Counted from the stretch's first letter, positions 37,473-57,157 are shown. The stretch: 64,000 nt of DNA from Andalucia godoyi And28 (GCA_009859145.1 VRVR01000005.1:339448-403447), one strand, 5' to 3'. The notes: generated by a model not told the origin, from the letters alone. Made by a program: numbers and translations.

Positions 37473-37525
<53 letters not shown>

Positions 37526-37965
37526 CAATTTTTTCTCTTTTCCATTAATAATGTACTACTACCCTCCAACCCAAACGTTGCCACATTTTTGTCACTCCCA
37601 CAACTGTCTTAGTCAACCTTCTGTTTTCTTCAAAGACACTCTCCATTCTGCAATAGCACCAATCCGATCAGCAATATTGCCCTGGGAGGTTGGCAGATCT
37701 GCGCAACAACAGCCAAAATTTTTCAGCTCCTCGCCTTTGGAGCTTGCGCTTACTACCGACCGTAGTGGAACATGCCCCCCTCTACCTCGTAGATCATCAC
37801 AGAGGGAGCGGGCTGGACGAGAGTCCAAAGTTCAGGTTCCTTTCTCCGCTTCCATTCCCGTAACCAAGACGCGTTCGTAAAAAGAAGCCACTTGTGTTCT
37901 TCTCATTCCGTATGCAGTCGCTTTATCTATATCAAATGTTGGAAAAAGGTGTCTTCATGTGCATG

Positions 37966-38038
37966 TCGACTATGGTCCAGGTGGTTAAGACGTCGCCCTT
38001 TCAAGGCGAACACCCGGGTTCGAGTCCCGGTAGTCGAG
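37966..38038 (+). tRNA. tRNA-Glu(UUC)
   Basis: Acceptor stem TCGACTA/TAGTCGA, anticodon arm TCGCC-CTTTCAA-GGCGA, T arm CCGGG-TTCGAGT-CCCGG. Confidence 0.97.
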
Positions 38039-38179: not shown

Positions 38180-41100
38180 ATGGAGACGCTGAACGGTCTG
38201 TTTCTGCCAATAGACCAGTGGATCTCTCTGCTGCTGAACGATGATCAGAGCCAAACTCTTCTTTCATGGTCCTATGGAAGTGGTGTTTCAAAGCAGGTGT
38301 TGATGCAACGGAGGTCTCTCCTTGTCCGAGCGATTCTCGGTTTCCTTGCTTCGTTTCAAAAGTCAGAACACTGCGACGCAGGACGAATGATGATGATCGA
38401 TCCGTCCACTCCAGTTGCAGTCGTTCGATGCCCTGGCCGCGTCAACCTCCGGGGAATGCACATTGATTCACATGGAGGAGCATGCAACGCGATTGCAACA
38501 GATAGGGAAACAGTGCTTGTTTTCACTGTGGCTTCCTCTGCGAAACTCGACGCCGTGCATGTTCCTGCTGCGTTGAGACCGACCACCACCGTGATTCTTT
38601 CCAACGGTCGAGACGCCGATGTTTCGTGGTTTCATTGGTTATCTGCGCTTGGATCTTCACTTTCTGCAGACTTGGTAAAGCAGGTGGTGCAAAGCCCGTC
38701 GCACAGTGTGCCTCCTCACCATGTGTTGTGTGTGGACAAACAGGCATCCGGATCAGGATTACCCGATCAGGCATCCACGTTTCCTGCGTGGTGCAAATAC
38801 GTATTTGCTTCAATCAAAGTATTAGAAGACGCGGGATTCTTGTTTCCAGCGTGCGCGGACCAGCATTCTCCAATGTTAGTGGGACATTTGGAGTCTGATC
38901 TGCCAAGCGGCTGTGGGATTTCATCGTCGCATGCATTGCTGATGGTGTTGCTGCAGTCGCTGGTCGTAACATGCCGATGCGCGTTTGCCAACTCGGACAC
39001 AACACTGTTTGAAAACACGAGAAACAGGCAGGGATTGGATCGGATTGAGATTCTGGAGCTTGCAAGAGCGGCCGAGTTCAAGGCAGGAAAAGTCACCGGG
39101 CTTGGAGACCAGGGCGCAATGGAATTCTCCAAGGCCTCACAAGTTGTGCATGCCAACTTCTATCAGGACGATCTGGTCAGCATTGATCCAAGGCATGTGC
39201 CGCTTCCTACCGATGAAGTTTCCATCGTTGTTGTGAATTCGCTTACGGAACGGGATCTAAGTGGGGATGCAAAGGTTCGATATGCAATACCCAGGTTTGC
39301 GTACTCGATCGGTCTTGCGCTGGTGAAGCAAACCGCGCGGCGCATGTGGGGGGCTGCAGAACTGGACGGTGAGACATCGGGGCATGGTGGACACAAGGAA
39401 CAGAAGGACGACTGGGCATGGCTGGATCGCCTGTCGAGGATCAGCAGTGCCGATGGTCGAATGGCACGATATGGGGGATGGACTGGAGTTTATCAGCTGT
39501 TGCGCGCTCTTCCAGCAAGAACAACTGTGGACGAACTTCAGTCGCTGCATCCCGAGTTGCATGCGGATATCTCACGTGCGGCTTCTTCGTATCTGAACAA
39601 TATTGGATCCAACATGCTTGATGAAGTCGGTGGAATTGATGTTCGGGGCCCTTTGCTGTATGGTGTTTCGGAATGTGCTCGATCGGAAAGGTTTTTTGAG
39701 CTTCTTCACAGACATGCAGAGGCCTCTGCATCCGCATCATCCGATCATTCCAGCCACGTCACCAATTACTTGTTGGATGCATGCAGACTCATGTCCATTG
39801 GCCATCTCGGCGATTCTATCAAGAGCCCTGCGGTCAACGACGAAATGTTGGAGGGGCTCATTCAGCGGACATTGCTCATGGAAAAGAGCGATCGCTCTTG
39901 TGCGCTGGAACTGCAGCCTGGCAGTTTTGGAGCTTCCACGACGGCCCTGGATGCCATTCAAGAGCTTTTGATATCCAAAGGAGCTCTTGGAGCGTCGCTC
40001 ACGGGTGCTGGGTTGGGCGGCGTGGTGGTGGCCCTAGTTCCAAACGACCAAGCTGAGCGGGTTGTGGAGGATAGCGCTTCTTTTGTCCTTCGTTGCTTCG
40101 GCGCGTGCCATCCCGAAGCGAATTCCGACGACCGCCACGTTGTTGCATTCCGCGTCTTTCCGGTGAACGGCGCCGGATTTGTGCATCCACACATGGCTTC
40201 GCTCGCGATCGGGGCAGAAGCTGCACTTCGAGCAAGTTCGCTTCGTCTGCTTCCTGCTCGCCAGTCTCTTTACCCGCTGCGCTATTCCACGACGGAAGCA
40301 CTCGAAGCGATTCGTGCATCTCTGCAGACGTCGCCTTTCCCAAGTGCTCTGTTCTCCGCAGATCATAAGCGCTTTCATGTTGTGGTCACTGGCGGAGCCG
40401 GGTTTATTGGCGCTCACGTTTCGCTGTCTTTCGCAGCAGCAGGACATGATGTCACGGTCCTTGATGATTGCAACGATTACTATGATCCATTGTTAAAATT
40501 TGCAAACTTGTGGATGCTCACCCGGCATCCGAGCGTCCGTTTTCGGTGGTGCGACATTCGTTCCGTTGCTTCACTCGAATCTGCTTTGGCAAGCATCCGA
40601 TCGAATCTGCAAAATGTGGATCTTGTGGTTCATCTTGCTGCTCGTGCTGGTGTTCGGCCGTCTGTTCAGTTTCCGGAACTCTACAAATCGACAAACGTCA
40701 CTGGAACGCAGAATGTTTTTGACGCGTGTGTCGCGCGTGGATGTCGTGCATTTGTTTATGCATCGTCGTCATCGGTGTATGGAGCGAAGCAAGCAGGGCC
40801 GTTTCGCGAGGACATGACTCTTTCGACTCCCGAGTCTCCTTACGCAGCGACAAAGGCAGAGTGCGAAGTGATCTCGAATGCAAGAGCGTATGAGTGCGAA
40901 CAAGGTGCGTTCATTGGGCTTCGCTTCTTTACTGTGGATGGCCCTATGTTGTGCGGCGTCCCAGGACGCCCGGACATGGCAATTGCATCTTTCATTCGAT
41001 CGTTTGAGACCGGCGGTCGAGAAGCTGTCACAATGTACGGAGACGGAGAGTACCAGAGAGACTTTTCATTTGTGCAGGATATTGTTCAGGGAATCCTGCG

Positions 41101-41623
41101 TTCTGCGGATCGTGCCTATGTGAATCGTGACCGCAATTTCCACGAAGTCTTTAATCTCGGCGAGCAAGACACCACAACGGTGAAGGCGGTCATCTTGATG
41201 ATTGCACAAGAGATGGGGCTGCTCTCATCTTGCAATGTCGGGGCCCTCAAGGACCTGCCGATCTCCGTGCAGAACGAATTGCTAGCGGATTTGATACAGC
41301 GAGGATTGGTAAAGCGGGTACCGCCCCCTGCTGGTGATGTCCCGCTGACCCATGCATGTATCAACAAGGCAAAGACTGTTCTTGGTTATGCTCCTGCCGT
41401 GAAGATCCAAGAAAATGTTCAGCGAACGGTGATGTCACGTCAGAACGGCGTTTGGTTTTCTGTTGAAACCCGAAAGTCTTTGGAGGCAGTTTTCGACAAG
41501 ATGCATGGGAAGCCGCTTGACGCCGATCGAGCACTGTTGGCGAAGTCTTGTCTTCGACGCATGTGTGTGCTGGAACCGGAAGTTGGTTTGTGGCAAGCGG
41601 CAGTGTCCCTGCTCAGCCAATAA
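38180..41623 (+). CDS. Fusion protein: GHMP sugar kinase (galactokinase/galacturonokinase-like) plus NAD-dependent UDP-glucuronate 4-epimerase-like SDR
   Basis: Kinase motifs: PGRVNLRGMHID, LPSGCGISSS, GLGDQ, GASLTGAGLGG. SDR motifs: TGGAGFIG, HLAARAGVRPS, YASSSSVYG, YAATK, GLRFFTV..GRPDMA. One uninterrupted frame; ATG at 38180 (the track start runs through the tRNA). Confidence 0.9.
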   Translation: METLNGLFLPIDQWISLLLNDDQSQTLLSWSYGSGVSKQVLMQRRSLLVRAILGFLASFQKSEHCDAGRMMMIDPSTPVAVVRCPGRVNLRGMHIDSHGGACNAIATDRETVLVFTVASSAKLDAVHVPAALRPTTTVILSNGRDADVSWFHWLSALGSSLSADLVKQVVQSPSHSVPPHHVLCVDKQASGSGLPDQASTFPAWCKYVFASIKVLEDAGFLFPACADQHSPMLVGHLESDLPSGCGISSSHALLMVLLQSLVVTCRCAFANSDTTLFENTRNRQGLDRIEILELARAAEFKAGKVTGLGDQGAMEFSKASQVVHANFYQDDLVSIDPRHVPLPTDEVSIVVVNSLTERDLSGDAKVRYAIPRFAYSIGLALVKQTARRMWGAAELDGETSGHGGHKEQKDDWAWLDRLSRISSADGRMARYGGWTGVYQLLRALPARTTVDELQSLHPELHADISRAASSYLNNIGSNMLDEVGGIDVRGPLLYGVSECARSERFFELLHRHAEASASASSDHSSHVTNYLLDACRLMSIGHLGDSIKSPAVNDEMLEGLIQRTLLMEKSDRSCALELQPGSFGASTTALDAIQELLISKGALGASLTGAGLGGVVVALVPNDQAERVVEDSASFVLRCFGACHPEANSDDRHVVAFRVFPVNGAGFVHPHMASLAIGAEAALRASSLRLLPARQSLYPLRYSTTEALEAIRASLQTSPFPSALFSADHKRFHVVVTGGAGFIGAHVSLSFAAAGHDVTVLDDCNDYYDPLLKFANLWMLTRHPSVRFRWCDIRSVASLESALASIRSNLQNVDLVVHLAARAGVRPSVQFPELYKSTNVTGTQNVFDACVARGCRAFVYASSSSVYGAKQAGPFREDMTLSTPESPYAATKAECEVISNARAYECEQGAFIGLRFFTVDGPMLCGVPGRPDMAIASFIRSFETGGREAVTMYGDGEYQRDFSFVQDIVQGILRSADRAYVNRDRNFHEVFNLGEQDTTTVKAVILMIAQEMGLLSSCNVGALKDLPISVQNELLADLIQRGLVKRVPPPAGDVPLTHACINKAKTVLGYAPAVKIQENVQRTVMSRQNGVWFSVETRKSLEAVFDKMHGKPLDADRALLAKSCLRRMCVLEPEVGLWQAAVSLLSQ

Positions 41624-41783
41624 ATAATGGCTTCAAACAACGATGTCAAAAAAAAGAAGTCAATCACGATCTTTAAAAAATTGAAGATAAAATAATAATA
41701 ATAAAATACAAAAACAGGAGATTGTTTCGCAAAATCAAACACACATCCTCCTTTTCATCCCCGGAAACCCCGCGTCTCGCCAA

Positions 41784-44700
41784 TTACAAGTCTACAATTT
41801 CTGGAACTTCCGCAGGTAACCCCATTGTCGCATCCTTGTCGATCCGGGCTAAGCACCTCCGCAAACCTGACCTCAGGACAAGCCACTCTCGCGCACCATC
41901 CTGCCGTCCATCCTGTTCTTTCTTATCCGGCTCGGGCGCAAAAAATGGAAATCGGCGGGAAAGACCGGACAGCAAATCCAACCTTTTTGTGGACTTTGGA
42001 GTCTCCTCTGGGATGTGCGGTCGATAGTGCGCTCGGTCAAACGGCGCGGCATCCATATGGGCAGCAAGAATCGCACAAGGAAGGAAATTGAACAACGGGG
42101 ATTCAACGGGAGCAACGGGACTCGTTCCTTCAAGGATCGGGCTAGCAGAGTCTTCAGAGGATTTCACCTCTACAAGATTCCGTTCGCTTTGCAGTGCTGC
42201 TGCATCTGCAGATTCATGCGCGACAGAGCATGCCTCGAGGTACCTGATAGTTTCGTCGATGGACGGCATGAGCCCACGGGGATCAAACAGGGACGCAAGA
42301 TACTCCACTCGACCGTTGCTGTGTCCATTCGCAAGAGCAAATCGAGTAGCCTGACGGCGGTCGTTGGCAGAGTGTCGCACAATAAAGTCTTCCCACCGAC
42401 GTTCATATCCAGCACCTCCGGGACGGCTGCGATCCGTCATGAAGACGTGGTGGTGAGCCATAATTGCCAAGGCCTTTGGTGACCAACGCAGCTCGGAAAA
42501 TGCCGAAGCAGAACGCAAGCACGGCAGAGGCGTCAAAAGACCAAAAGACTCGCAAGCACAGTAGAACGATCGTGCAAGAAGACCTCCGTCGGTATTCGAT
42601 GAAGACAGCAGCGATTTATCTAGTGTGTCAATCTCCTTTTGCACCACCGACCATACCCAACTTGCCACAATGTCCCAAGCAGTCCAAACTTCGTCAACTC
42701 GACTTGCCACACGCTTCCGCACTTCAGCTTCCCATTCCTTATCACCTGGTGCACCCTGCAAAGGCCGGATACCATCCTCTTCTAGTGCTAGCCAAGTGGG
42801 AAGCGGTACTTCTTGATCAATGTACACAGAGGAGACTTGATCAACCACCGACTTTCGGGCAGCGACTCTGCGTCGAAGGGAGGAATTCCAGAACGACGTT
42901 GACGTTTCCGCGGAAAACGATGATCTTGCAGACGAGAATCCAAGGAAACCAAAGAGCTTTCCGATCATCTCCGTGGAATTGGATAATGGCGTCGAAGGAG
43001 ACTGAACTCCCATGGAAGATGACGAGGATGCCGACGATACCGACGACGACGAAGAAGCGTGATGCAGGATAGAATAAGGAATTGACACCTTCTCCAGGGC
43101 GATTCGTTGCTTGTACAGACTGTTTGAGCTCGCAGACGAAGTCGTGACCAGAATGTCGGCTTCCGTGCGCTGTTTCGGAGTCATCCACATCGTCCACTGG
43201 CTATCGGCTTTTTCCTTCTCAGCGTCTGCACTCCGATCTGGAACGCCGAGAACATACGGATAAATGATGGAATTCTGCGGAGTATAGCTGTACTGGCCCG
43301 TCACGGAGCATGTCTTCAAGTGGGCTCGGATTTCAGAGCGCGAAGCAAACGGGAACACAGACTTTGGCAAATGAGTGACAATCAATCTTTTGGCAGCACC
43401 AGTTAGTGGCAGTACTGGGTAATCTCCATTCGCAGAGAGTGCATCTCCCTTTCTTGGAGATGTGTCCCTGTGGTGGTGGTGGTCTGTCCTCGGGGAGGCT
43501 GGTGCTTTGCTGCTGGAGACTGTGCTCGTCGGCGGCTTGACAAGCGCGCCTGACATGAACCCCTTTGAAACTTTCGGCGCCGACGGAGGCGTAGAGTGCG
43601 CATCGGACGGTTGGAAAAGTTCACAGAAAAGGTAGCCGAGCAAGGCGTCTCGCCAAACATTCACAGACTCGGTCTCTGAATATCCACGAGAGATGGAGAC
43701 ACGCACAAACTTTCTGAGCAACTCGAGAGCATGCGATGGTCGTGGATCATGATAGAGCGAGAGTTGAAGATGGGCGCGGATGTCCAGAAGGAGTTGCGAT
43801 GTGCTGATCTCATTCTGCAGCCTATTCAGGAACGCTGCATGCATTCCGTCCCAGTCAAGGGTGCAGCTGGACACGACTCCTGTTCTGCGATTCAAGCAGA
43901 ACCACTGATCCATCGGCATGCGTGGAGTAGCAATCAATATAGAATCCGCAGCGGCAGGAAGCAAAGCATCATCTCCAAAAGGAAGCGTTGTCAATTCGAA
44001 TGGAATGACGTCGTTTGCGAGCGCAAGAATCTTTGCCGAGTGTCCCGGAAGCGCAAGGATTCCGAGATTCTGAAGCGGAAACAGTGACAGCAATGGGCGC
44101 TTTGTTGACGGTGTCTCGACGTTCCACACACACTCGAGTTTGCAGCGATGGTGGATAACATAAACGCAACTCCTGTATCTTCCGGGTCCCTCCATTCCCT
44201 GTTCCATGACGCATATCGCACCCTCCGCAAGTCTTACAAAATGGATCCATTTCGTCTGCGATTCGCACTGTTCTTCCTCCCAGAGCCCACGAACGTGTCC
44301 ATCCGCCAGCCGAATGGGCAACTCAATGTCGCAAACAACTTTTGGGGATCGCGGATTGTCGATCAGCACGGCCCGAAACACCGACGTATCCTTACGCGCG
44401 TACAACAAAAACAGACAAGCGTTTTCTGGATCAATCTGCACCAAGGCAGGCGTCTCCGAAACCCAAGCAGAGCGCGCCAGGGGAGGCAGAAATGCCTGGT
44501 ATGCATGGCTCTTCTCCTTGTGTATTCTATAAACGGACAATTTCTGCAGATGTTGATGCTGCTGCTGCTGTGGATGGTTGTGCTGATGATGCCGCGAATC
44601 TCCTGCATGGCTCCCTTCTTTTCCCTTTCCCTTTTCTCTCTCCTTTTCCTTTTCCTTGGATGGAGGTTCGAATCCCTTGGGCGGCTTCTTTTTCCACTCC

Positions 44701-45161
44701 AATCGAAGAGTATAAATGGCGGTTTCCTGCGCGTAGCAGACCAGAATGTGACTGTCGCCAAGGAAAAGAAGCCGAGGAGGCGTCAGTGCCGGAGACGTGC
44801 ACCCAACCACGGACGAAGGAACACAGCCTGGATGCAATTCAAGGATCTGCAAGCTTGCTGGCGACGAGCTGAGAGCAAACACAAGGACGGTGCGCTGCCG
44901 ATTGATTGTCGCAGAAAATATTCGTTCATTCTCCTTGAGCGGAATCGCGCACACAGAATCGAATTTTCGCTCCACTGCGTCGTAAAGCGCCACATACGCA
45001 TGATACAAAGTATGGGCATGACACACAATCGTGCAAGTCAGAAACATCCCATAGCGATCATGGCCGATAACAGACTCGCTCACAATGCTTGCATTTTCCC
45101 AGAGCGGAAAGATCCCCGCGCTCCTTGGAAACAAGTTGTAATGAAACGCGCACTTTATCAT
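41784..45161 (-). CDS. GSAP/pigeon-like protein (gamma-secretase-activating protein family, tentative)
   Basis: N-terminal beta-propeller-like segment (ALYD...IFSATINRQRTVLVFA...ILELHP...VQIDPENACLFLLY...FRAV) resembles GSAP as I recall it; helical C-terminus. Confidence 0.6.
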   Translation of the reverse strand: MIKCAFHYNLFPRSAGIFPLWENASIVSESVIGHDRYGMFLTCTIVCHAHTLYHAYVALYDAVERKFDSVCAIPLKENERIFSATINRQRTVLVFALSSSPASLQILELHPGCVPSSVVGCTSPALTPPRLLFLGDSHILVCYAQETAIYTLRLEWKKKPPKGFEPPSKEKEKEREKGKGKEGSHAGDSRHHQHNHPQQQQHQHLQKLSVYRIHKEKSHAYQAFLPPLARSAWVSETPALVQIDPENACLFLLYARKDTSVFRAVLIDNPRSPKVVCDIELPIRLADGHVRGLWEEEQCESQTKWIHFVRLAEGAICVMEQGMEGPGRYRSCVYVIHHRCKLECVWNVETPSTKRPLLSLFPLQNLGILALPGHSAKILALANDVIPFELTTLPFGDDALLPAAADSILIATPRMPMDQWFCLNRRTGVVSSCTLDWDGMHAAFLNRLQNEISTSQLLLDIRAHLQLSLYHDPRPSHALELLRKFVRVSISRGYSETESVNVWRDALLGYLFCELFQPSDAHSTPPSAPKVSKGFMSGALVKPPTSTVSSSKAPASPRTDHHHHRDTSPRKGDALSANGDYPVLPLTGAAKRLIVTHLPKSVFPFASRSEIRAHLKTCSVTGQYSYTPQNSIIYPYVLGVPDRSADAEKEKADSQWTMWMTPKQRTEADILVTTSSASSNSLYKQRIALEKVSIPYSILHHASSSSSVSSASSSSSMGVQSPSTPLSNSTEMIGKLFGFLGFSSARSSFSAETSTSFWNSSLRRRVAARKSVVDQVSSVYIDQEVPLPTWLALEEDGIRPLQGAPGDKEWEAEVRKRVASRVDEVWTAWDIVASWVWSVVQKEIDTLDKSLLSSSNTDGGLLARSFYCACESFGLLTPLPCLRSASAFSELRWSPKALAIMAHHHVFMTDRSRPGGAGYERRWEDFIVRHSANDRRQATRFALANGHSNGRVEYLASLFDPRGLMPSIDETIRYLEACSVAHESADAAALQSERNLVEVKSSEDSASPILEGTSPVAPVESPLFNFLPCAILAAHMDAAPFDRAHYRPHIPEETPKSTKRLDLLSGLSRRFPFFAPEPDKKEQDGRQDGAREWLVLRSGLRRCLARIDKDATMGLPAEVPEIVDL

Positions 45162-45667
45162 GCCTTTTCACGCACACCTCCCTCGCAATTTCAGAATAAA
45201 ATACAAGCGCATGAAATTTTTAATTAAATAAAATAAAAAAGCAATATGGAAATTCAATATGTGAAAAGCATGGTGCAAATAGCAATTTCGGAGGGGAAAG
45301 CAGCAAAGGGAAACCAGGAAATAAGGGAAACTTGACGTCTGTTTACTACGACAGATCCGCTTGAGAAAAACCGTTTCCTTTTTCATTCCACGTTTTTTTC
45401 TTTCAAATCATCCAATTTCAGTTGTTTTGCCTTTGTTTAGGAGGATTCCGTTTCTTTTTCACTCAATGGTTTTATTTTTATTATAATGAATTGATTAACT
45501 ATTTTCATTTTTCGATTTCCTTCTCGTTTTTTTTCTTTTCCTGTGCAGACAGAGTTTGAACGTATTTTATTTTCAAGAAGAGTTTCCCCCCTTTCTTCTT
45601 TTTTTTTTTTTGAACATCTCTCTTTATTGTTGTTGCCTTTGAAATCATCATCGTCATCATCACTATT

Positions 45668-46462
45668 ATGTTTGGGGGATCAAATCCGAAAGCAGTAGAC
45701 ACTCGGCAGCGTGCGTATCGGACGCTTGACACTTGTGCAGCGGATGGAGCATGGGTGGAAGAACCGCAGTTCAACCGTCGATCGATGAATCCAAAGACGC
45801 TCGTGGGAAACTGGCAGGAAGCTCGCGTCGCTTCCGAGAACGAGCCAGTGTCTGCAATCACCATGGCGTTTCAGTCGACTACTGCCGTGCGCAACAAGGA
45901 AGATGCTGAGAATCTGCGCGTTCGACTGCCGAAGCCCAACCAAGCTGCTCAGTTTGCGCTGGGGCCTGGCGGGAAAATGGTTCCGCTCTTCGTTGATCCT
46001 GGGGACGGAAATATGAATAAGAGAGAGTCGCTGATTACGGCGGGTTCGACTTCGAACCTCGTGGGAGGAGATGGCAGGTTCCGCGGAGAGTCGACGTACC
46101 GGTCAGATATGCTGTCCAAGGAAAAGATGGAAGAGATCGAGAGCAAGAAACAGCGGAGTGTGCGACAGGCGTTTTTGGAGAAGAAGTGGCAGATGGAGGC
46201 GCAAAAACAGGTCCAGGAAGAGGCAAAGGAGAAGGAGAAGGAGTCATTTGTTGGGAAGACGAGGGGACGAAAGCTTGGAGAAGGTGTTCAGCAGGATGTT
46301 GAGGGTCTGTACTTTGAGCAGCCCGCTTCGTTCTACACGCAGCACATGGGACTCACCAACGTCTATGGATCGCGCGCGCAGGCAGCCGGCGCTTCCTTTG
46401 CAAAATGCTCCACATTCTCCATGCCCATCGAAGAATACAAGGCCGGGTATGAAAAAGAATAG
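45668..46462 (+). CDS. Axonemal microtubule inner protein, SPAG8/CFAP143-like
   Basis: NWE-type motif TLVGNWQEAR, a STYRSD motif, and C-terminal QPASFY...FAKCSTFSMPIEEY. Confidence 0.6.
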   Translation: MFGGSNPKAVDTRQRAYRTLDTCAADGAWVEEPQFNRRSMNPKTLVGNWQEARVASENEPVSAITMAFQSTTAVRNKEDAENLRVRLPKPNQAAQFALGPGGKMVPLFVDPGDGNMNKRESLITAGSTSNLVGGDGRFRGESTYRSDMLSKEKMEEIESKKQRSVRQAFLEKKWQMEAQKQVQEEAKEKEKESFVGKTRGRKLGEGVQQDVEGLYFEQPASFYTQHMGLTNVYGSRAQAAGASFAKCSTFSMPIEEYKAGYEKE

Positions 46463-47368
46463 TCACCACCCCATCCCCTTCTTCTTCTTCTTCTTCTTCT
46501 TCTTCTTCTTTTTGTTATTGTCTCTCACACCACTCTTGTCGGGTTTTGCACAAACTCGCCACAGCGAGTCGCAAGCCGCAAGTGTAATATTTAATTTTAT
46601 TAATAAACAGCTATTATCAACTGCCCCACCACCACTTTGCGCGTCCTGCAGGCCGATCGCAACAAGTCAACCGTGCACCAACATCACGTCAACTTCCTTC
46701 TGTCGCAACCATTCCCTCCTCCCCTCCTCTCCTTCCCCAAAAGAAAAAAAGGGACGCGGCACGACAAGATGTCTCCAAGAAAGGGGATGCGCGCCATCGT
46801 GGTGGTTTTCACCGCCGCAGTTCCCGCGCGTCATCATCACCATCTCTGAAATGTCCGATCTGCTTCTACAAACGGAAAATTTGAAATGCTTGAAAGGCAA
46901 AAGCACCGGAGGAAAATTGCCAGTTCGAGTCAATTTGCGAAGATTCTGGTCCTACCAGCTCACACACTCGACGTTCGGACTTCGGGAAAAACGCGGAAAT
47001 GTCACTCCCATCAACCGGCTCTCCGTAGTAAGTGGCATTATTGGTTCTTTCTTTTCTTTTTTTCCTTTTGTTTTGCAGCTTCACATTGTCTCGCTCAATT
47101 TTTTCTTTTCCCCGCTGCCGCAACATTAACCCACCCTCTCACTCGTTCTCTATTTATGATCTTGGTCTGTTTTGTTTTGCTTTGTCTATTCATGTGATCC
47201 CAAACTTTTCGTTTTCTTCTTCTTTTTCTTCTTTTTCTTCTTTTTCGTTTTGTTTCCCTCCTTCCCTCCTTCACCTTTTTCCTTCTTCTTCTTCTTCTTT
47301 TCTTTTTGCTGTTTCATTTCAAAGATTCTTTCTTTCGGTTTGTTTCGCGCACGTCTCACAACACACTC

Positions 47369-49600
47369 ATGGACGGATATATCCTCACAGACGAGAATCA
47401 CAAGATCCTGTATTCTTCGACGCTGGATGCATCGGAAGTGATCGGAACCGCATTCTCCGAGTCGAAGAGAAAAGAATATGTTGAAAAGGCACATCTTTCA
47501 GACGGAAATCGACTTGTTACGGTATGGCAACACAAGAGTGTCATTTGTGGAGAGACGACTCCTTTTATTTCGCTTTCTGCATCTTCTGCGGATCTCACTG
47601 CGTCGCCCGAGAAGCTCAACACGACACCTACCGAGCAATCGACAAAGTCCAAGACGGTGGTTCGAGACAAGGTCGTCAGCATTGATCCAAACAGCTCGAG
47701 TGCGCATCTTGGAAATACAACGTCTGATGTGGAGAGCCAAATTGGGAAGGGAATTGAAATGGAGTTCTTCAACGTGAATTTCAATGCTACCAGTCCAATT
47801 GATGGATCCAAGAAGCAGATTTTGAACGACTGTGCGGGATGTGCGCGCAGTGGAAAGCTTACGGTTCTTATGGGGCCTTCTGGAGCTGGAAAGACGACTC
47901 TGCTGAATGCAATTGCAGGAAGAATCAAGGTGGACGACGGCTCGCAAATGCTCTTTGACGGCCATGCCCGGGATCGATCGATCAAGCGCCGCACTGGTTT
48001 CGTGCTCCAAGAAGATATCTTGTTTTCAAACTTGACTGTACGAGAAACCTTGCTCTTCACCGCATTGCTGCGACTTCCGTACGAGATGCCACACACGGAG
48101 AAGATCGCTCGAGTCGAAGAGGTTATTTCGCAGTTGGGTCTGGAGCGTGTTCGAAACTCTATCATTGGTAATTTCATGATGAGAGGCATCTCTGGAGGTG
48201 AGCGCAAGCGTGTCAATGTTGGCTGCGAGCTGCTGGCCTGGCCGTCAATTCTTATTCTCGATGAACCGACGTCGGGCCTCGACTCCACTACAGCTCTTGA
48301 ACTGATGAAGACTCTGAAGCAACTCGCCAGACGCAACGGTACCACCATCATCTCGTCCATCCATCAGCCATCCTCGCAGATTTACAGTTTATTCGACGAT
48401 CTCATCCTTGTGGGTCGTGGATATGTACTGTACTATGGACCGGCGAACAAGGCCACTTCGCACTTCCACTCTCTTGGGTTCCCCGTCTATGAAGATTTCT
48501 CTGCGGGGGACTACCTTATCGAGATGGTCATGCATCCAAAGATTGCCAACGATGACGAGGTGCTGAAAAAACTGAATCGCCACGCGTACGACCAAACAAT
48601 GTTTCGTCCACGAAACTGGAAATCGCTGGAAGGCCCTGCGGCGACGACGGACGGAGTGAAAGTGGAAGAAGTAACCACGACTGTTTCAGAAGTCCCTGCC
48701 CGCGTGCAGCACGACGGAGAAGATGAAGCAGAAGCCCCGAAATTCAATGTTCCCTTCTGGGGACAATTCAAGGCACTTTCGCAACGAGCCTTCAAGCAAA
48801 AGCGCGGCCAATCCATGCGTTGGCTGTTCGTCGTTCAGGTTATTGCCATCGCACTTGTGGTTTCTGCGCTGTGGTTCCAGATTCCAAGCAGCGAATCGCA
48901 CATTCAGGACTTGACCGGCGCAGCGTTCTTCATTGGAGTTTTCTTCCAGTTCTTCAATTTGTTCAGTTGCTTGTCGCAGTTCCCCTCCGAGAGGGCTGTC
49001 TTGTACAAGGAGCGTGCGGCAGGCGCGTACCGTCTTTCTGCATACTTTTGCGCCAAGACTTTGTCTGAACTTCCGTTTGACGTCCTGTATCCGTTCATGT
49101 TTACCACCATCACATTCTGGCTGTGTGGATTGTACATCAACGGCGCAGCGTATGTCGAATTCTTCTTTACCATCCTCCTCGGAGCATTGTGTGCACAGTC
49201 TCTAGGTCTGTTCATCTCTGCAGCCATTCTTGATTTCGAAAAGTCCATTGTGTTTGCGTCAATCTTCATTCTGTTCCAGATGCTTGCTGGTGGGTTCTAT
49301 GTCCGAAACATGCCCAACTGGATCGAATGGATTTCCTACATCTCGATCATCAAGTACATGTACGAAGCGGCAATCTTCATCGTCTTCCCGGACGACCGTG
49401 ATTTCTCTTGCTCGTCGACGTCGACCATTTACCGAGCGTCGAACGGAGGGATGTGTCCAATCCCAGGAAATGCAATTCGCGATGCTCTTGACATTCACGG
49501 TACAATTGGATCGCGAATCGGCGCTCTGTTTGCCTTTATGATTGGATACCGCATCTTGGCATACTATGCTCTCCGTTACCGCGGAAAAGCCAGATTCTAG
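47369..49600 (+). CDS. ABC transporter subfamily G half-transporter (NBD-TMD)
   Basis: MGPSGAGKTT, ISGGERKRV, LDEPTSGLDS, SIHQPSS, ERAVLYKERAAGAY and six C-terminal TM helices. ATG at 47369. Confidence 0.95.
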   Translation: MDGYILTDENHKILYSSTLDASEVIGTAFSESKRKEYVEKAHLSDGNRLVTVWQHKSVICGETTPFISLSASSADLTASPEKLNTTPTEQSTKSKTVVRDKVVSIDPNSSSAHLGNTTSDVESQIGKGIEMEFFNVNFNATSPIDGSKKQILNDCAGCARSGKLTVLMGPSGAGKTTLLNAIAGRIKVDDGSQMLFDGHARDRSIKRRTGFVLQEDILFSNLTVRETLLFTALLRLPYEMPHTEKIARVEEVISQLGLERVRNSIIGNFMMRGISGGERKRVNVGCELLAWPSILILDEPTSGLDSTTALELMKTLKQLARRNGTTIISSIHQPSSQIYSLFDDLILVGRGYVLYYGPANKATSHFHSLGFPVYEDFSAGDYLIEMVMHPKIANDDEVLKKLNRHAYDQTMFRPRNWKSLEGPAATTDGVKVEEVTTTVSEVPARVQHDGEDEAEAPKFNVPFWGQFKALSQRAFKQKRGQSMRWLFVVQVIAIALVVSALWFQIPSSESHIQDLTGAAFFIGVFFQFFNLFSCLSQFPSERAVLYKERAAGAYRLSAYFCAKTLSELPFDVLYPFMFTTITFWLCGLYINGAAYVEFFFTILLGALCAQSLGLFISAAILDFEKSIVFASIFILFQMLAGGFYVRNMPNWIEWISYISIIKYMYEAAIFIVFPDDRDFSCSSTSTIYRASNGGMCPIPGNAIRDALDIHGTIGSRIGALFAFMIGYRILAYYALRYRGKARF

Positions 49601-50119
49601 TCGCTTGGCTGCTTTCTGGACTCACACCTGTTCCGTCCCATGCCGCCATTCGATCCATCCGTCCATCCGCCAATCGCTTCTCTTTGTTTTTATATATCTT
49701 TTTTTCCTCCCGTCTTGTTGTTGTTGATCGATGTTCTCGTTAGATTATTTTACATTTTTGTGTGTTGTACTCTGTTTCATTATCCCAGTCGTCTCCTTTT
49801 CTGTGTGTCCCAATAATAAAAATCGCTTGTCGTGAAATAATATTGCTTGTCACCGAAGACAGGTCCAAGCCACATGTTTTTATTTTAATTGGGGGCGAGC
49901 ACCAACTCTTCAATGCAGATTGCTCTGCATCAAAGGGTCGGACTACAAAGAAGTCCAACGCGCGAATGCCGTCGTCGGAAATCGGGATCGGCAAGCTCGA
50001 TTTTTATTATTTTATTATTGGTTTTTTGAAAAGCTATACTTGTTTCCACCTGTTGTTTCGCACTGTTTCGTTTGGTTCGCCTACATTATACACTGAACAT
50101 GCATATCTACGAAGAGACA

Positions 50120-50405
50120 TGCATATTCAATCCTGCATCCCGTTGCCGGGAAGGGGATCGGCCCCAACACGCCTCTCTGCGCTCTTCAGATAAATGTTCC
50201 GCGCTCCGTTCCCAATCTCGGTCAATGTGCGAGCCACTTTCTCAGCGTGACACGCCGTTCCTGGGAAGGGTGCATTTTGATTCTGACGGCCCTAGCAGCA
50301 GGCGTAGTGACACGTGGTCTCTTAGGAGGTCTGCGGGACCTAGGAGGCCCTGCATCGGGCGGCGTAGGCGTAGGCGAATGCGTCATCCCAGCGCACTCAC
50401 GCCCA
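50120..50405 (-). ncRNA. Candidate structured RNA, possibly SRP (7SL) RNA; boundaries approximate
   Basis: GC-rich non-coding island with nested inverted repeats enclosing two hairpins. One hairpin is CCGAGA-UUG-GGAA-CGG-AGCGCGG, close to SRP helix 8. Most G-U pairs favour the minus strand. Confidence 0.35.
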
Positions 50406-50835
50406 TATTTGAATAAAAACGTGAAACCAACGAATGATAGAATAGATGGCTACGGATGCTGCGTTAAAGAGTGTCGAAAATGCGGAGCCTGTGTCACCGG
50501 CTGAATTTTGGCCGAGCGTGCGTAAGCACGAATTCCCTGTGAAACAAACGTGTTTTCTTTTTTCCCCCGTATATGCATGACAATGACGTGTCATTATTCA
50601 ACGGCCAAAATCTCCTATACTCTCGGACTTTCTGCTGAAAAGCTGTATTTCCCCGTTTTTTTAATTCAAAAAATTTGGTGTTTCTTCTGAATCGTCATCT
50701 TTATTTCCTCCTCGCTGTCGCCTAACAACTCATCTGGGAAACGCGGAGCGAAAGCACAGAAGAATCGAGAGAATAGAAGGAGAAGGAAGGAAAAACTGAC
50801 AAGAAAAAGAAAAGGGCCGGGGAGGACTGAGGTAA

Positions 50836-52245
50836 ATGGCGCTTCCATATCGTGTTTCTGATGTGCTGTCTTCTCGACATCCGTATTCACAGCCGAACTT
50901 TTCTTCGTTGCGTGAATCCGAGTCGTTGGATGTACAGCTTGGATACGGGAATCGAGCGACAGAGCGAATCTTGGAGCTCTTGTCCAATGCACGCTATCCG
51001 TACAAGCAGTGCAAAGGATCGCTTCAGCTTTTGCGCTTGGAGTGCACAAGCTCAGAAGCACGAGTCAAGCTTGTCCAATCGCGAAATCTCGTTGTTCTAA
51101 ACAATCTGTTTCTTCGATTGCTGCATGATCCGCTTGGAAGCACGAATTCTGCAGTGTCCGAAAGCCAGCCTTATAAAGCAGCGACGAGGAGTTCCGGTGC
51201 TTCGTCTGTCGATAGCGATGATGACAATGAGAGCGAGAACGAGAATGATGGTGATGAACAGGATGAAGAAGGAGCAGTGGGGGTGGAGGAGGAAAAGAAT
51301 TCATCTGGAGATACGTTTGCTGATTGGAGTGCAGTGTTTTGCGAGCTTTGTGCGTTTCAAAGTACGTTTGCGTCGCTTTCGGTTGGGGCTGAAGAGCTGA
51401 AGCGAATCGGATTCTTGAAATCGCTGAAGCAATTGGTTTCGCGACCAAACTTGAATGCAGATTTGCTGGATTCAGCGTGCCTGATTGTCGAGGCGCTGGG
51501 GACGCATCAAGCCGGAGTCCAGTTGTTTGCAGCGAGTTGCAGAGCGGACAATGCTGACGAAGCAAGTTTCCCCAGCCTGCTTCTGGAGGTCCTGGAGCGC
51601 CCGACAGCCTTGCTGGAGACGTGCAGAAAAATCGTTTCGTTTTTCAGCCAGATTGCTGCTTATCCGGGGAGCCGAGACCTGCTGATTTCCAACAGCGCAG
51701 TGAAGAGCTTGCTCGTGCGTGCTGAGATGTGCATTCGAGATCCGCAGGCTCGCGAATCCCCCGAAACGCTGGTGGAAATTTCGTTTGCAGTATCCAATCT
51801 TGCCACTGACGCGAGCGCAAAGAGGATTTTTGCACAGCACACAACAACACTGTCGGCAATCCTTGTTGAGTGTTCTGCGAATCGTGCAGAACACACAATG
51901 TGCAGGTTTCTGGAAATGGTTTGTCTGACCGCTGTTGCAGAAGAAACGAAAAAGTTGTGTCTGGAAGAACGTCCGTTGCTCGTACTCAAGAAGGCGTATC
52001 CCAGTCTGTTACGAGTGTTGGCAAACTTGCTTCGAAAGTACGTGCAACACACAAAGGTTCAGGCTCTGATTGTCCAAGCGCTACGCTCTCTTGCAGAGTT
52101 TCCAGAGACCAAAGCAACGCTGTACGAATACTTGCAACTCGGAAGCGAAGAGGAGAAACACGCGCTCAACGACCTGGTTTGGAAAAACACAAGGCTGTTT
52201 AGTGCATTTGGGAGCAGTACCGAGGAACTGAAGCCTATTTTGTAA
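50836..52245 (+). CDS. Armadillo-repeat protein, RSPH14 (radial spoke)-like
   Basis: N-terminal GYGNRATERILELL, ARM-like helices, C-terminal ALRSLAEFPE...NDLVWK. The ARM call is firmer than the RSPH14 assignment. Confidence 0.6.
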   Translation: MALPYRVSDVLSSRHPYSQPNFSSLRESESLDVQLGYGNRATERILELLSNARYPYKQCKGSLQLLRLECTSSEARVKLVQSRNLVVLNNLFLRLLHDPLGSTNSAVSESQPYKAATRSSGASSVDSDDDNESENENDGDEQDEEGAVGVEEEKNSSGDTFADWSAVFCELCAFQSTFASLSVGAEELKRIGFLKSLKQLVSRPNLNADLLDSACLIVEALGTHQAGVQLFAASCRADNADEASFPSLLLEVLERPTALLETCRKIVSFFSQIAAYPGSRDLLISNSAVKSLLVRAEMCIRDPQARESPETLVEISFAVSNLATDASAKRIFAQHTTTLSAILVECSANRAEHTMCRFLEMVCLTAVAEETKKLCLEERPLLVLKKAYPSLLRVLANLLRKYVQHTKVQALIVQALRSLAEFPETKATLYEYLQLGSEEEKHALNDLVWKNTRLFSAFGSSTEELKPIL

Positions 52246-52309
52246 AGAAAAAACCTCGAGAATTGACAGACTTGCTGCATCGCTCTATCATCATTACGTA
52301 TGACGTTTA

Positions 52310-53098
52310 TTATTCCATGCGATGCGTCGCATGGCATTCCGTTTTCTCGTCCTTGCAATGTGCCGTTCCGAGTTGCAAGCTGTTCAGCAGCTCGAGAACA
52401 GAGTCTGCGTCTGGGCGTTTGCAAACCAACACTGGAGGGCAAGAAGCGTGCTGTACTTGGCCGAGCGCACACTGCGTCGTCCTTCCCAGTGCGATGCACG
52501 TAGAGTACGAAAAGACATCGGGAGCCAACCTGTGCACCGTCTTGACTCCCGAAGGACTGAAAAACACTTGGGCAAGCGGCGGCTGATCCTGATCGCACGG
52601 AATCGAAAGCGTGCGCACGCCTTCCATTGTGTACGCAACAACCTCTTCAAAAGCCAATGCCTGCTCACGAAACAGCCGTGGAATGATATCCAGTCGTTGG
52701 TTTCCACAAAGGAATACGACTTTCAAATGCGTACGCTGTGACAGCACAAGATTCGCCAAGCTTGCGGCGTCCTGTCCCTCGGAGGGCGTGCGGACGTCCA
52801 CAAAGCCCATCTCCAGTGCCGCCCTGCCCGTCGTAGGTCCAACAGCGTACAATCGTTTGCGCTTCCATTCCAACAGCTGAGCGTCGGGCAGCATGCCAAG
52901 GGAGGCCAGCGCCCGCTTTGAAGTGATGATCAGCGACTCGAAGAATTGGGGATCCAGCCGCGTAAACGAATCAAGTGTTTCAAACGTTGTGTCCAGCACA
53001 GGAATCGTAGTCACGCGGAAATGCGGCGAGAGTTTGGACAAGAACACGTCGGAATCGGGGTCTTCTGGATTGTCTCGGTACATCCACACAGACCGCAT
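52310..53098 (-). CDS. UROS: Uroporphyrinogen-III synthase
   Basis: IPVLDT, LIITSKRA, YAVGPTT, FLCGNQRLDII, EVVAYT, VFFSPSGV, IALGRTT. Confidence 0.92.
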   Translation of the reverse strand: MRSVWMYRDNPEDPDSDVFLSKLSPHFRVTTIPVLDTTFETLDSFTRLDPQFFESLIITSKRALASLGMLPDAQLLEWKRKRLYAVGPTTGRAALEMGFVDVRTPSEGQDAASLANLVLSQRTHLKVVFLCGNQRLDIIPRLFREQALAFEEVVAYTMEGVRTLSIPCDQDQPPLAQVFFSPSGVKTVHRLAPDVFSYSTCIALGRTTQCALGQVQHASCPPVLVCKRPDADSVLELLNSLQLGTAHCKDEKTECHATHRME

Positions 53099-53439: not shown

Positions 53440-53445
53440 AAAAAA
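53440..53445 (-). terminator. Pol III terminator (T6) of the 5S rRNA gene
   Basis: A6 on the plus strand at the 3' end of the 5S gene. Confidence 0.75.
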
Positions 53446-53560
53446 GTACAGCACTGGGAATTCCCGAGTGGTCACCCACCTCAGTACTACTCCAGCCTGA
53501 GAGCACTTGACTTCGCAAATCGGACGGGATGCGGTATTTTCACTCTAGTATGGCCGTACC
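53443..53560 (-). rRNA. 5S rRNA (single copy in the window)
   Basis: Reverse complement reads GGTACGGCCATAC...CATCCCGTCCGATTTGCGAAGTCAAG...AGTAGTACTGAGGTGGGTGACCACTCGGGAATTCCCAGTGCTGTAC-TTTT, with eukaryotic 5S landmarks and a paired 5'/3' helix I. Confidence 0.97.
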
Positions 53561-53815
53561 TGAGAGGCACGGTTGCTAGTCAGTTGAAGTACACCAACAC
53601 AAAAAACAAAAAAAAGACGCAGTTGTGGCGATGAGCAGTGCAACCCCCCCGAACGCTGGGAACGTCGAACGCGGCCGGGGGTGCGAGACGCCCACCTGGT
53701 CAATCTATGATAAGCCACACGTGGAGAGGAAAAACCGAGGAATAGTGGGCAAGGGAGATCGATAATATACAGTATGGAGCAAAATGGGAGGAATACAGTT
53801 ACAAGCGCGCACATG

Positions 53816-56800: not shown

Positions 56801-57157
56801 CAGAAACGGTCGAATCAGCATGTGCGACGCCACGGATCGCGCCAGACACTCGCGTAACTGCGAGACGAGACAATCGACAAATCGGCTTGAAACCCTCTCG
56901 CACTTCACAATAGGCTCCGTGATGCACAACACAAACTCTTCTGCAGCCGATTCTCGAAACAGAAAATACGCACAGCATGACTCGAGCAAGGACGATACGG
57001 AGCCATTCTCATCGCTGAATGCCAATGATCTGCACACGTCTCGCACCAGCAAACACTGCTCTTCATTTGAACAAGCAGACAGAAGTTCATCAATCGCCGA
57101 CATGGCAGATCCACTGTTGTCGCGCAAGAACATCAAGAACGATGCGCTGTCCAACAT
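53816..57157 (-). CDS. Large alpha-solenoid protein, tentatively FANCI-like
   Basis: LFSAISVLCRSSISICDAVLLWIRKSS resembles the FANCI monoubiquitination-site segment; basic C-terminal PRKKKRLR. The CDS is solid but the family call is tentative. Confidence 0.55.
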   Translation of the reverse strand: MLDSASFLMFLRDNSGSAMSAIDELLSACSNEEQCLLVRDVCRSLAFSDENGSVSSLLESCCAYFLFRESAAEEFVLCITEPIVKCERVSSRFVDCLVSQLRECLARSVASHMLIRPFLISQIREIAASLSHPKSDVFHAAVASDLLMAFLDASPADVVADVSGVFPEQVAKCVPSSIAPILECMFLSPVPPVVDELVRKVLLDRFSTLLGSDCENACVAVLRAISQHLASVRLSANVSPWHAFVFDLVENTCEAAPFATSVAPALIALVSSSRTTTVRFLDSCKKSMRSTKARMILSALCFSCESERLECLACLSGLVMENVAEWRHVVSILSGVAFLSLLSEQLLACLLDNDTAHHVVWRKTCCDFLASVLLRLPFLSRSLMRIIVNRTASNVGNSQFLLQTSPLCVLMDVLEASFGTDMFADSFSAFGTGLLQLITTCTDSALPPLFSAISVLCRSSISICDAVLLWIRKSSAFRQSTAMMRCIALARVLVVDRVIQRAEDAQHIQSWMMAQHVHAPCVRYLCTYSACYISCSGIVSSSPGNSWQGTSESKMVSDLSRILSFLSDAVRTADRGEPVTRICGIDIPIPSVFDTLHRCICVSGTGCKEDVVSRLASYLVDRRFLQWVYKQPPSVDVFRVLCMSYSLICAVLLRSTEMAEQLVLGWYLLGKCTEVYRPDYPSLCPPSFVFVHPLLFRKLVGRSSIVKLLAPDLSQAWQASALAGRPLDDTVGLDVLAFAYVSAGPLFCDHLFMDARLASLTFEVYLITCRWWWSSPETYPPLSPALVDVARNLNPHFMKEILQDCASVYQTFRGFLIDVLRYSVCMEALDERSIPAPMLEFLGYRLFDGKKLFRTSDILTLCTMALVQEVQLNAGNSVLTKCLDLIESATPIFFENAAKDVLSIVSVLLSLLQMKVVSHILVFRRVCRFLIAYASQSALLRFVERLTFKYYTSVFTEDQQMRLIDELLPLVVGRVVPSNVKLVALLFNPENASRIEHCKQLRGFVRSLISNLKTSEEARLCACFVLQCVANSTTVRLFSAMRPYLHDFDSEILQSLSTSFSVVEPEEPTPRKKKRLRSQNPWVDANLAHEDGTDSYHDLDDFVVVSRKKTYSS

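Follow-up and report, generated by a model that had tools for sequence, protein, structure and literature searches.

A rare fusion of a galactokinase-like kinase and a UDP-uronate 4-epimerase-type domain in Andalucia godoyi as a candidate nucleotide-sugar salvage enzyme

The 64,000-nucleotide stretch of Andalucia godoyi And28 analyzed here (GCA_009859145.1, VRVR01000005.1:339448-403447; referred to in its full length as the window) carries on its forward strand a single gene in which a long galactokinase-like sugar kinase of the GHMP family is fused to a 4-epimerase of the extended short-chain dehydrogenase/reductase (SDR) type. The fusion is a rare, uncharacterized joining of known enzyme families. 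Its frame is open for 1147 codons from the ATG at 38180 to a TAA stop at 41621–41623. The Pfam domains and the intact catalytic motifs of both halves confirm what a first-pass annotation had read from the sequence alone, namely one uninterrupted frame with a complete kinase and a complete extended SDR. The layout of the gene is as follows.

37966..38038, forward strand: tRNA-Glu(UUC) gene, followed by a T-run (Rfam tRNA, 59.9 bits; ARAGORN), which bounds the coding sequence on its 5′ side
38180..41623, forward strand: coding sequence of the kinase-epimerase fusion, 1147 amino acids plus stop (open frame, Pfam domains, full-length homologues P0002, P0166 and P0167)
38411..40195, forward strand: GHMP/galactokinase-like kinase domain, long form with insertions, residues 78–672 (Pfam, profile A2 against the PDB, AlphaFold, Foldseek)
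40196..40375, forward strand: inter-domain linker, residues 673–732, between the two domain envelopes, without a stop and with the frame continuous
40376..41431, forward strand: extended-SDR 4-epimerase domain of predicted UDP-glucuronate 4-epimerase type, residues 733–1084 (Pfam and PDB matches)
41432..41620, forward strand: C-terminal tail, residues 1085–1147, conserved with the environmental homologue P0166

The mechanical open reading frame (ORF) reaches back to 37892. Because this extension crosses the tRNA-Glu(UUC) gene, which ends 142 nt upstream of the fusion start codon, and because conservation among homologues begins at W14-L17-L18, the ATG at 38180 is taken as the start. An automatic gene caller might run the coding sequence through the tRNA by mistake. 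An intergenic (TC)n/(CTTT)n microsatellite lies at 37480–37530, upstream of both the tRNA and the fusion gene. A linker between kinase and epimerase is found in all fused homologues, and the end of the tail, ‘...LEPEVGLWQAAVSLLSQ’, can be compared with that of P0166, ‘...VEPDVSLWPILLEHFAQR’. In agreement with the first-pass annotation, a 19-mer Kyte-Doolittle hydrophobicity scan of the whole protein revealed no membrane segment, its two highest values (1.96 and 1.88) falling on the buried helices of GHMP motifs II and III. The N-terminal type-II membrane anchor of the plant Golgi GAE subtype is thus missing from the protein, which is predicted to be soluble with the epimerase as an internal domain.

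The kinase half contains the following elements.

38453..38479, forward strand: motif I variant GMHIDSHGG, residues 92–100, at the position of galactokinase GEHxDYxxG
38540..38779, forward strand: low-complexity, lineage-specific insertion, residues 121–200, predicted to be disordered (pLDDT <50) and gapped in P0002 and P0003
38903..38938, forward strand: GHMP motif II, the phosphate-binding loop PSGCGISSSHAL, residues 242–253, with P242, S248 and S250 invariant across the family
39098..39112, forward strand: GLGDQ, residues 307–311, with G307 and D310 invariant and Asp310 aligned to the catalytic Asp of galactokinase GGMDQ
40001..40021, forward strand: GHMP motif III TGAGLGG, residues 608–614, with G609, G611 and G614 invariant, within the GHMP_kinases_C match

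Two Pfam families recognize this domain above their cut-offs, the galactokinase signature GalKase_gal_bdg (PF10509, motif I; residues 78–115, 34.3 bits against 23.1) and GHMP_kinases_C (residues 564–630, 43.3 bits against 21). GHMP_kinases_N is weak in the fusion protein (17.3 bits, below the cut-off of 22.3) and exceeds its cut-off in the homologues P0002 and P0003. A profile built from 15 family members (A2) and searched against the PDB retrieved human N-acetylgalactosamine (GalNAc) kinase (2a2c, E 8.7e-57) and galactokinases (E 1e-38 to 1e-47), which are the closest, distant, relatives of the domain; AbGHMP (PDB 9ulx) is a solved GHMP kinase of moderate similarity. The AlphaFold model (AF2, pTM 0.83) predicts a galactokinase fold, and the best 50 Foldseek matches listed all belong to the galactokinase family (galactokinases, Gal3p and GalNAc kinase; target-normalized TM 0.62–0.82, probability 1.00).

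Motif I had been quoted correctly in the first-pass annotation and placed about 20 nt off, at 38432–38476. When aligned to GalNAc kinase and Pyrococcus galactokinase, it retains Arg87, His94 and Asp96, with Met93 in place of Glu and Ser97 in place of Tyr. R87, N89, G92, H94, D96, G99 and G100 do not vary across the 15-member alignment. The whole long-kinase family has lost the galactokinase contact residues Glu and Tyr of GEHxDY, the Glu position being occupied by Met in the fusion, by His in bacterial fused forms (GHHVDH) and by Arg in P0156 (GRHIDH). The first-pass annotation ascribed to the GEHxDY motif a contact with the C6-OH of galactose and gave plant galacturonokinase (GalAK) a motif I of the HIDxxGG type, without the Glu; loss of this Glu would fit a kinase substrate that lacks a neutral C6-OH. 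Furthermore, the catalytic Arg (R87, in GRVN) and Asp (D310, in GxxDQ) are invariant and aligned with their equivalents in GalNAc kinase and Gal1p, GLGDQ matching the ‘GgmDq’ of GalNAc kinase and yeast Gal1, and the Tyr368 position is kept. From motifs and model, the domain appears to be a functional anomeric sugar kinase whose sugar pocket has changed. It has also been considered that it is a non-catalytic sugar sensor or regulator of the epimerase, as Gal3p is to Gal1p, which would agree with Gal3p structures ranking among the top structural matches and with the unusual long insertions and N-terminal helical extension. This is very improbable, given that R87, PxGxGxSSS, GLGDQ and TGAGLGG are each preserved without variation in bacteria as well as eukaryotes and that stand-alone and nucleotidyltransferase-fused forms of the kinase argue for catalysis.

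The epimerase half contains the following elements.

40388..40411, forward strand: Rossmann NAD-binding motif TGGAGFIG, residues 737–744, invariant in alignments A1 and A3
40766..40774, forward strand: Ser863-Ser864-Ser865, aligned in the 6zl6 alignment to Thr126-Ser127-Ser128 of BcUGAepi (catalytic Ser/Thr and carboxylate binders)
40841..40855, forward strand: catalytic Tyr888-x3-Lys892 (YAATK), residues 888–892, with Y888 aligned to BcUGAepi Tyr149 and both Y888 and K892 invariant
40925..40981, forward strand: FFTVDGPMLCGVPGRPDMA loop, residues 916–934, with Thr918 aligned to the carboxylate-binding Thr178, the insertion MLCGV, and Tyr replaced by Asp920
41219..41326, forward strand: ~30-residue insertion separating NLGE from GDVP, residues ~1014–1049, present only in kinase- or nucleotidyltransferase-linked epimerases, bacterial and eukaryotic

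The domain is matched by Pfam Epimerase (residues 734–979, E 1.2e-43) and GDP_Man_Dehyd (residues 736–1082, E 1.2e-37). Its best three PDB matches are 5u4q from Klebsiella (E 2.8e-41), MoeE5 (6kv9, E 2.3e-33) and BcUGAepi (6zl6, E 4.9e-27), followed by GalE and dehydratases. The first of these was deposited as ‘dTDP-glucose 4,6-dehydratase’ and is presumably a UDP-glucuronate/galacturonate (UDP-GlcA/GalA) epimerase. All sequence motifs quoted in the first-pass annotation are present, namely TGGAGFIG, ARAGVRPS (residues 821–828), ASSSSVYG (residues 861–868), YAATK and GLRFFTVDGPMLCGVPGRPDMA (residues 913–934). In BcUGAepi, Thr126, Ser127, Ser128 and Thr178 hold the carboxylate, Tyr149 is the catalytic base, and the related decarboxylases carry Glu at position 128 (PMC7984243). 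The fusion protein has the Ser/Thr-Tyr-Lys triad (S863, Y888, K892) and all four carboxylate-binding positions (S863, S864, S865 and T918), while the decarboxylase-marker Glu is absent at the Ser128 position of the 6zl6 alignment.

Two insertions set the domain apart from its solved relatives. The first, MLCGV, corresponds to a 5-residue gap in the alignments to 5u4q, 6kv9 and 6zl6, and among 37 epimerase domains from 32 proteins an insertion of 5–8 residues in the FFTVYGP..GRPDMA loop, together with the change of Tyr to Asp or Gly, occurs only in eukaryote-type members. At the second, before GDVP, the MoeE5 and BcUGAepi alignments stop near residue 1017 (domain-query position 297) and restart near residues 1047–1051 (domain-query position 327 for BcUGAepi and 331 for MoeE5). 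The NLG-to-GDV spacing, taken by regular expression (anchored early in P0016, no match in P0059), is 60–65 residues in most of the kinase- or nucleotidyltransferase-linked (module) epimerases and 44–48 in two; of the 24 non-module domains, 21 gave no match to the pattern and the remaining three have short or no spans (37 and 43 residues).

The assignment of the domain to the UDP-GlcA 4-epimerase group (CapI/GAE type) rather than to GalE, which the first-pass annotation had also favored, is well supported by these comparisons. It bears directly on a Leloir-like alternative, in which the kinase would act on galactose, GalNAc or L-arabinose, with a GalE-type 4-epimerase of UDP-hexoses or UDP-pentoses as its partner. 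GalNAc kinase and galactokinases are indeed the best solved relatives of the kinase, a stand-alone relative is named ‘galactokinase’ by JGI, and the GalE equivalog (TIGR01179) is the top NCBIfam match of the epimerase domain. However, that match reaches 127.4 bits against a cut-off of 262.3, the nearest solved epimerases are all UDP-GlcA 4-epimerases, the carboxylate cradle is retained as Ser/Ser/Ser/Thr, and no member of the kinase family has the Glu and Tyr of GEHxDY. Moreover, BcUGAepi depends on the C5 carboxylate, and among UDP-GlcA 4-epimerases UDP-Glc and UDP-Gal are often not accepted or support much less activity (PMC7984243). A neutral-sugar module is thus rather unlikely.

Homologues were sought exhaustively among 1.84 billion representatives, with additional cluster look-ups; a word-indexed search with the whole protein had returned four matches only, probably because low-complexity words swamped it. 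The kinase-epimerase architecture was found in three further eukaryote-like sequences from independent assemblies. P0002 (1091 residues, Logan assembly of SRR15116022) is ~45% identical to the fusion, P0166 (778 residues, N-terminus cut off by the contig) is ~51% identical and has the C-terminal tail in common, and P0167 (824 residues) is likewise N-truncated; the latter two come from JGI metagenome contigs and are named ‘UDP-glucuronate 4-epimerase’. Two metagenome scans yielded no further fusions, the first giving no match and the second, which was saturated, only ordinary stand-alone epimerases. Database names for members are limited to ‘UDP-glucuronate 4-epimerase’, ‘galactokinase’, ‘GDP-mannose 4,6-dehydratase’ and ‘hypothetical protein’. 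In a profile search for named GalAK or GlcA kinase (GlcAK) relatives, the matches were unnamed or called ‘galactokinase’. No description of a kinase/UDP-uronate-epimerase fusion was found in the literature searched, in keeping with the first-pass annotation, which knew of none and would have been contradicted by widespread, already described homologues: the architecture recurs in other genomes, but seldom, and none of the databases searched has a name for it.

These homologues also speak to the reality of the gene. That two neighboring genes have been merged by an error of assembly or sequencing, or give separate transcripts, is hardly a credible explanation, since the fused frame occurs in four independent assemblies (the window, Logan SRR15116022 and the two JGI contigs) as well as in bacterial genomes, codon usage is uniform in both halves, and the 60-residue linker shows neither stop nor frameshift. 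The assembly join that the first-pass annotation had named as a possible objection is accordingly set aside. The fusion is real, being neither an assembly join nor a contaminant nor a recent acquisition. Because the architecture is shared with P0002, P0166 and P0167, and gene order is conserved with the contig that carries P0002, it is a long-standing resident of the eukaryotic lineage.

The bacterial relatives extend the architecture by a third domain. Kinase and epimerase are followed by an additional C-terminal domain in P0003 (the Omnitrophota locus L070; 1567 residues) and in P0173 (2107 residues), which falls in the same cluster as the delta-proteobacterial L081 module. P0108 (1033 residues) combines the kinase, and P0011 (922 residues) the epimerase, with this same domain. 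Searched against the PDB, a profile of the domain matched GlmU uridylyltransferase domains and nothing else (best E 4.6e-14). All three pairings of kinase, nucleotidyltransferase and epimerase thus occur as fusions, a classical signature of consecutive steps, and the predicted activities would therefore be linked in the order sugar, sugar-1-phosphate, UDP-sugar and UDP-4-epimer. Kinase and nucleotidyltransferase share one polypeptide in P0003, P0173 and P0108, and not in the fusion. The Omnitrophota triple fusion adjoins genes for an NTP_transferase and for a WecG/Bac_transf priming glycosyltransferase, the latter fitting the supply of a surface-polysaccharide precursor. In L081, a metagenome-assembled genome, the frame holds two in-frame TGA codons (9159–9161 and 9843–9845) without a frameshift, which could reflect a pseudogene, sequencing error or recoding, and P0173, from another assembly, is intact; residues 1–560 of P0173 form an extra N-terminal region without a Pfam match that resembles, by eye, an ATP-grasp domain.

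The long kinase also occurs alone. Stand-alone forms of 550–616 residues were found in Balamuthia mandrillaris (‘hypothetical protein’), Chlorokybus and several environmental eukaryote-like sequences. A survey of prokaryotes retained 80 genome loci. The majority belong to Candidatus Hydrogenedentota and Nitrospirales, some to Omnitrophota and one to Bathyarchaeia. In Hydrogenedentota and Nitrospirales, a same-strand string of MotA/ExbB, ExbD, large TPR and VWA genes ends with the kinase (e.g., L011, 2520–9641), the VWA-domain protein having a hydrophobic N-terminal stretch, and in 14 loci a DegT/DnrJ/EryC1 aminotransferase gene lies convergently downstream of the stand-alone kinase. Neither neighborhood is informative about the sugar.

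Separate phylogenies of the two domains, as proposed in the first-pass annotation, place the module epimerases of bacteria and eukaryotes as sisters and give no indication of recent transfer. In the epimerase tree, the kinase- or nucleotidyltransferase-linked epimerases form one clade with sister bacterial and eukaryotic subclades, the latter comprising the window protein, P0166, P0002 and P0167 together with two Preaxostyla proteins. The kinase tree unites all eukaryotic kinases, whether fused or not, in one clade and joins the fused forms of bacteria to a stand-alone kinase from Omnitrophota. The two Preaxostyla proteins, P0020 (Blattamonas nauphoetae KAK2948193.1, named ‘UDP-glucuronate 4-epimerase’ by NCBI) and P0059, carry the insertion-bearing epimerase behind an N-terminal region of 530–700 residues. 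The ~530 N-terminal residues of the Blattamonas protein are not recognizable as a kinase (hhalign probability 3.9% against the kinase profile), and the region shows no detectable similarity to the kinase or anything else searched. Four eukaryote-like proteins (P0005, P0019, P0023 and P0105) contain tandem UDP-GlcA-epimerase domains and a C-terminal hydrophobic tail, the second copy in P0019 and P0023 lacking the FFTVYGP..RPDM motif.

A common pathway for the two domains, UDP as the nucleotide and the identity of the sugar are our inferences. The protein would be a soluble bifunctional nucleotide-sugar salvage enzyme, the likeliest chemistry being the conversion of galacturonic acid (GalA) to GalA-1-phosphate and UDP-GalA, interconverted with UDP-GlcA; we give this reading about an even chance. 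In step 1, the N-terminal anomeric sugar-1-kinase, a member of the galactokinase branch with an altered sugar pocket, would form the sugar-1-phosphate. In step 2, a separate nucleotidyltransferase, fused to the polypeptide in the bacterial relatives, would convert sugar-1-phosphate and UTP to the UDP-sugar. In step 3, the C-terminal NAD-dependent epimerase would act as a UDP-uronate 4-epimerase of the UDP-GlcA/UDP-GalA type. The combination of steps 1 and 3 in one predicted enzyme is well supported by the domain composition, and GalA is a plausible kinase substrate. The overall interpretation of the first-pass annotation accordingly stands as to one bifunctional protein, a uronate-type epimerase and a separate step 2, and falls as to a lateral transfer suspected from missing introns.

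The same bifunctional logic could serve another acidic sugar or the opposite direction, for instance glucuronic acid (GlcA, e.g., from myo-inositol oxygenation), another uronic or aminouronic acid, or the conversion of UDP-GlcA to UDP-GalA. An epimerase of this kind works in both directions, the carboxylate pocket is conserved, GlcA salvage via a fused kinase/pyrophosphorylase is known in zebrafish, and the eukaryote-specific loop insertion could shift specificity. On the other hand, profile and fold place the kinase with galactokinase and GalNAc kinase, which act on sugars of galacto configuration, and Asp96 is invariant and aligned to the conserved Asp of GEHxDY; known GlcA kinases are generally placed in another GHMP branch. 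We consider such a variant unlikely. A wider proposal, which we put forward only tentatively, is an ancient three-enzyme module of a long GMH[IV]D[ST]HGG kinase, a GlmU-like nucleotidyltransferase and the insertion-bearing 4-epimerase, perhaps with an undescribed sugar specificity. The triple fusion occurs in Omnitrophota and delta-proteobacteria and the kinase-epimerase fusion in several protist lineages.

Several observations weigh against uronic-acid salvage by the fusion. The kinase is far from every characterized kinase, a single-sequence search of the PDB giving best E-values of only ~1e-6, and it stays well below the NCBIfam galactokinase equivalogs (TIGR00131, PRK03817 and others; 58.5 bits against 226.65 and 62.7 against 443). 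Of the 80 retained prokaryotic loci, 78 have a stand-alone kinase behind the ExbB-ExbD-TPR-VWA gene string, with no epimerase or nucleotidyltransferase gene within the flanks examined (≤8 kb, much shorter on small contigs), and the substrate of the family could therefore be something other than a uronic acid. The loop insertion and the Tyr-to-Asp change lie beside the substrate loop and could alter epimerase specificity. Both trees were built by neighbor-joining and carry no support values. Finally, no profile match to the bacterial-type nucleotidyltransferase was found anywhere in the window, so step 2 would be encoded elsewhere. Uronic-acid salvage with a separate step-2 enzyme is also what the first-pass annotation had envisaged, and the GlmU-like domain fused to kinase and epimerase in bacteria implies such an enzyme.

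The genomic surroundings bear on the origin of the gene. The window has ~50% GC, is intron-poor and carries genes on alternating strands, the neighbors encoding an ESCO acetyltransferase, a TPR-thioredoxin, a THH1/TOM1-domain protein, GET3, a P4-ATPase, ATG13, a C2H2 zinc-finger protein, ABCA, a DUF1765 protein, ABCG and EB1. Judged from the sequence, a kinetoplastid origin was rejected on account of the alternating strands, and an origin from yeasts or Giardia because GET3 is closest to human ASNA1 rather than to its fungal or Giardia counterparts; the presence of ATG13 makes a red alga doubtful. The first-pass annotation had seen in the absence of introns, together with bacterial-style motifs, a possible sign of lateral transfer; the intron argument does not hold because all long genes of the window are likewise uninterrupted. 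Codon usage of the fusion matches that of its neighbors (relative synonymous codon usage, r = 0.91; GC at third codon positions 0.52 against 0.49–0.59) and is even across the kinase and epimerase halves. Moreover, the gene order fusion, unrelated gene, ABCG half-transporter, ARM-like and HEM4-like gene is common to the window (38180–53098) and to the P0002 contig from SRR15116022 (L001, 215–9950; 61% GC), a second species, with protein identities of ~30–48% (ABCG 48%, the L001 copy being inverted). A recent lateral transfer is rejected on codon usage and synteny. An old transfer of the module between bacteria and eukaryotes, in either direction, is possible, and the trees would equally allow genes with linked functions to have fused more than once.

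Two further features of the window are unrelated to the fusion. A solitary, complete 5S rRNA gene (53443–53561, reverse strand, 100.8 bits) followed by a T-run lies between protein-coding genes, 5S genes being dispersed. Four long ORFs of 907–1394 residues at 41784–45161 (reverse), 3767–7951 (reverse), 53816–57157 (reverse) and 57588–60311 (forward) have no Pfam match and are rich in low-complexity runs of Ser, His and Gln.

What is known of uronic-acid salvage to nucleotide sugars comes mostly from plants, where GalAK or GlcAK acts with USP, and from lower animals, zebrafish among them. The bacterial triple fusions provide a domain-fusion argument that would give a pathway role to a large, unnamed family of ‘long galactokinase-like’ proteins, listed as ‘hypothetical’ in Balamuthia and represented by reading frames without a name in the unannotated genomes of Hydrogenedentota and Nitrospirales. 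Should the predicted activities hold, the fusion would offer a one-protein, one-gene tool for the enzymatic synthesis of UDP-uronic acids, and should the three-enzyme module be true, its product could mark a UDP-sugar route that present pathway maps do not include. The fusion is also relevant to the old sharing of a multi-domain metabolic gene between bacteria and eukaryotes.

Among known systems, the epimerase half is closest to the UDP-GlcA 4-epimerases (BcUGAepi of Bacillus cereus, 6ZL6/6ZLA; MoeE5 of Streptomyces, 6KV9; the Klebsiella pneumoniae protein 5U4Q; plant GAE; CapI), with which it has in common the extended-SDR fold, GxxGxxG, the catalytic triad, ASSSSVYG, RFFTV..GRPDMA and the four carboxylate-binding positions. 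It differs in the kinase fusion, the ~30-residue insertion before GDVP and the 5-residue insertion with Tyr-to-Asp in the FFTVYGP loop. Plant GAEs, furthermore, carry an N-terminal membrane anchor, which the window protein lacks. The kinase half has the GHMP fold, motifs I–III, the catalytic Arg and Asp and the Tyr368 position in common with galactokinases and GalNAc kinase (GALK1, GALK2 2A2C, yeast Gal1p/Gal3p, Pyrococcus GalK), from which it is set apart by ~16% identity in structural alignment, the change of GEHxDY to GMHIDS and an additional ~150–250 residues. With plant GalAK, reportedly Arabidopsis At3g10700 as described by Yang et al. in 2009, it would have the formation of GalA-1-phosphate in common, whereas GalAK is a stand-alone enzyme of ~420 residues.

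Fusions of consecutive salvage steps are known, and they pair other enzymes. Fkp is a fused kinase/pyrophosphorylase, and GNE, a UDP-GlcNAc 2-epimerase/N-acetylmannosamine kinase, joins a ROK kinase to a non-SDR 2-epimerase and thus belongs to other families and another pathway than the window protein. In yeast, Gal10p, an epimerase/mutarotase (PDB 1Z45) that is among the matches of the epimerase domain, sets a precedent for an epimerase joined to an enzyme of the same pathway, although its partner, the mutarotase, is of another family and pathway than the window kinase. The zebrafish enzyme DrGKUP fuses glucuronokinase and UDP-GlcA pyrophosphorylase (PMC3938481), with the nucleotidyltransferase N-terminal. 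In DrGKUP, plant FKGP and Bacteroides Fkp alike, a GHMP kinase is fused to a bacterial-type nucleotidyltransferase, the pairing also seen in P0108, P0003 and P0173, whereas the A. godoyi protein has an epimerase in place of the nucleotidyltransferase and would thus combine steps 1 and 3 rather than steps 1 and 2.

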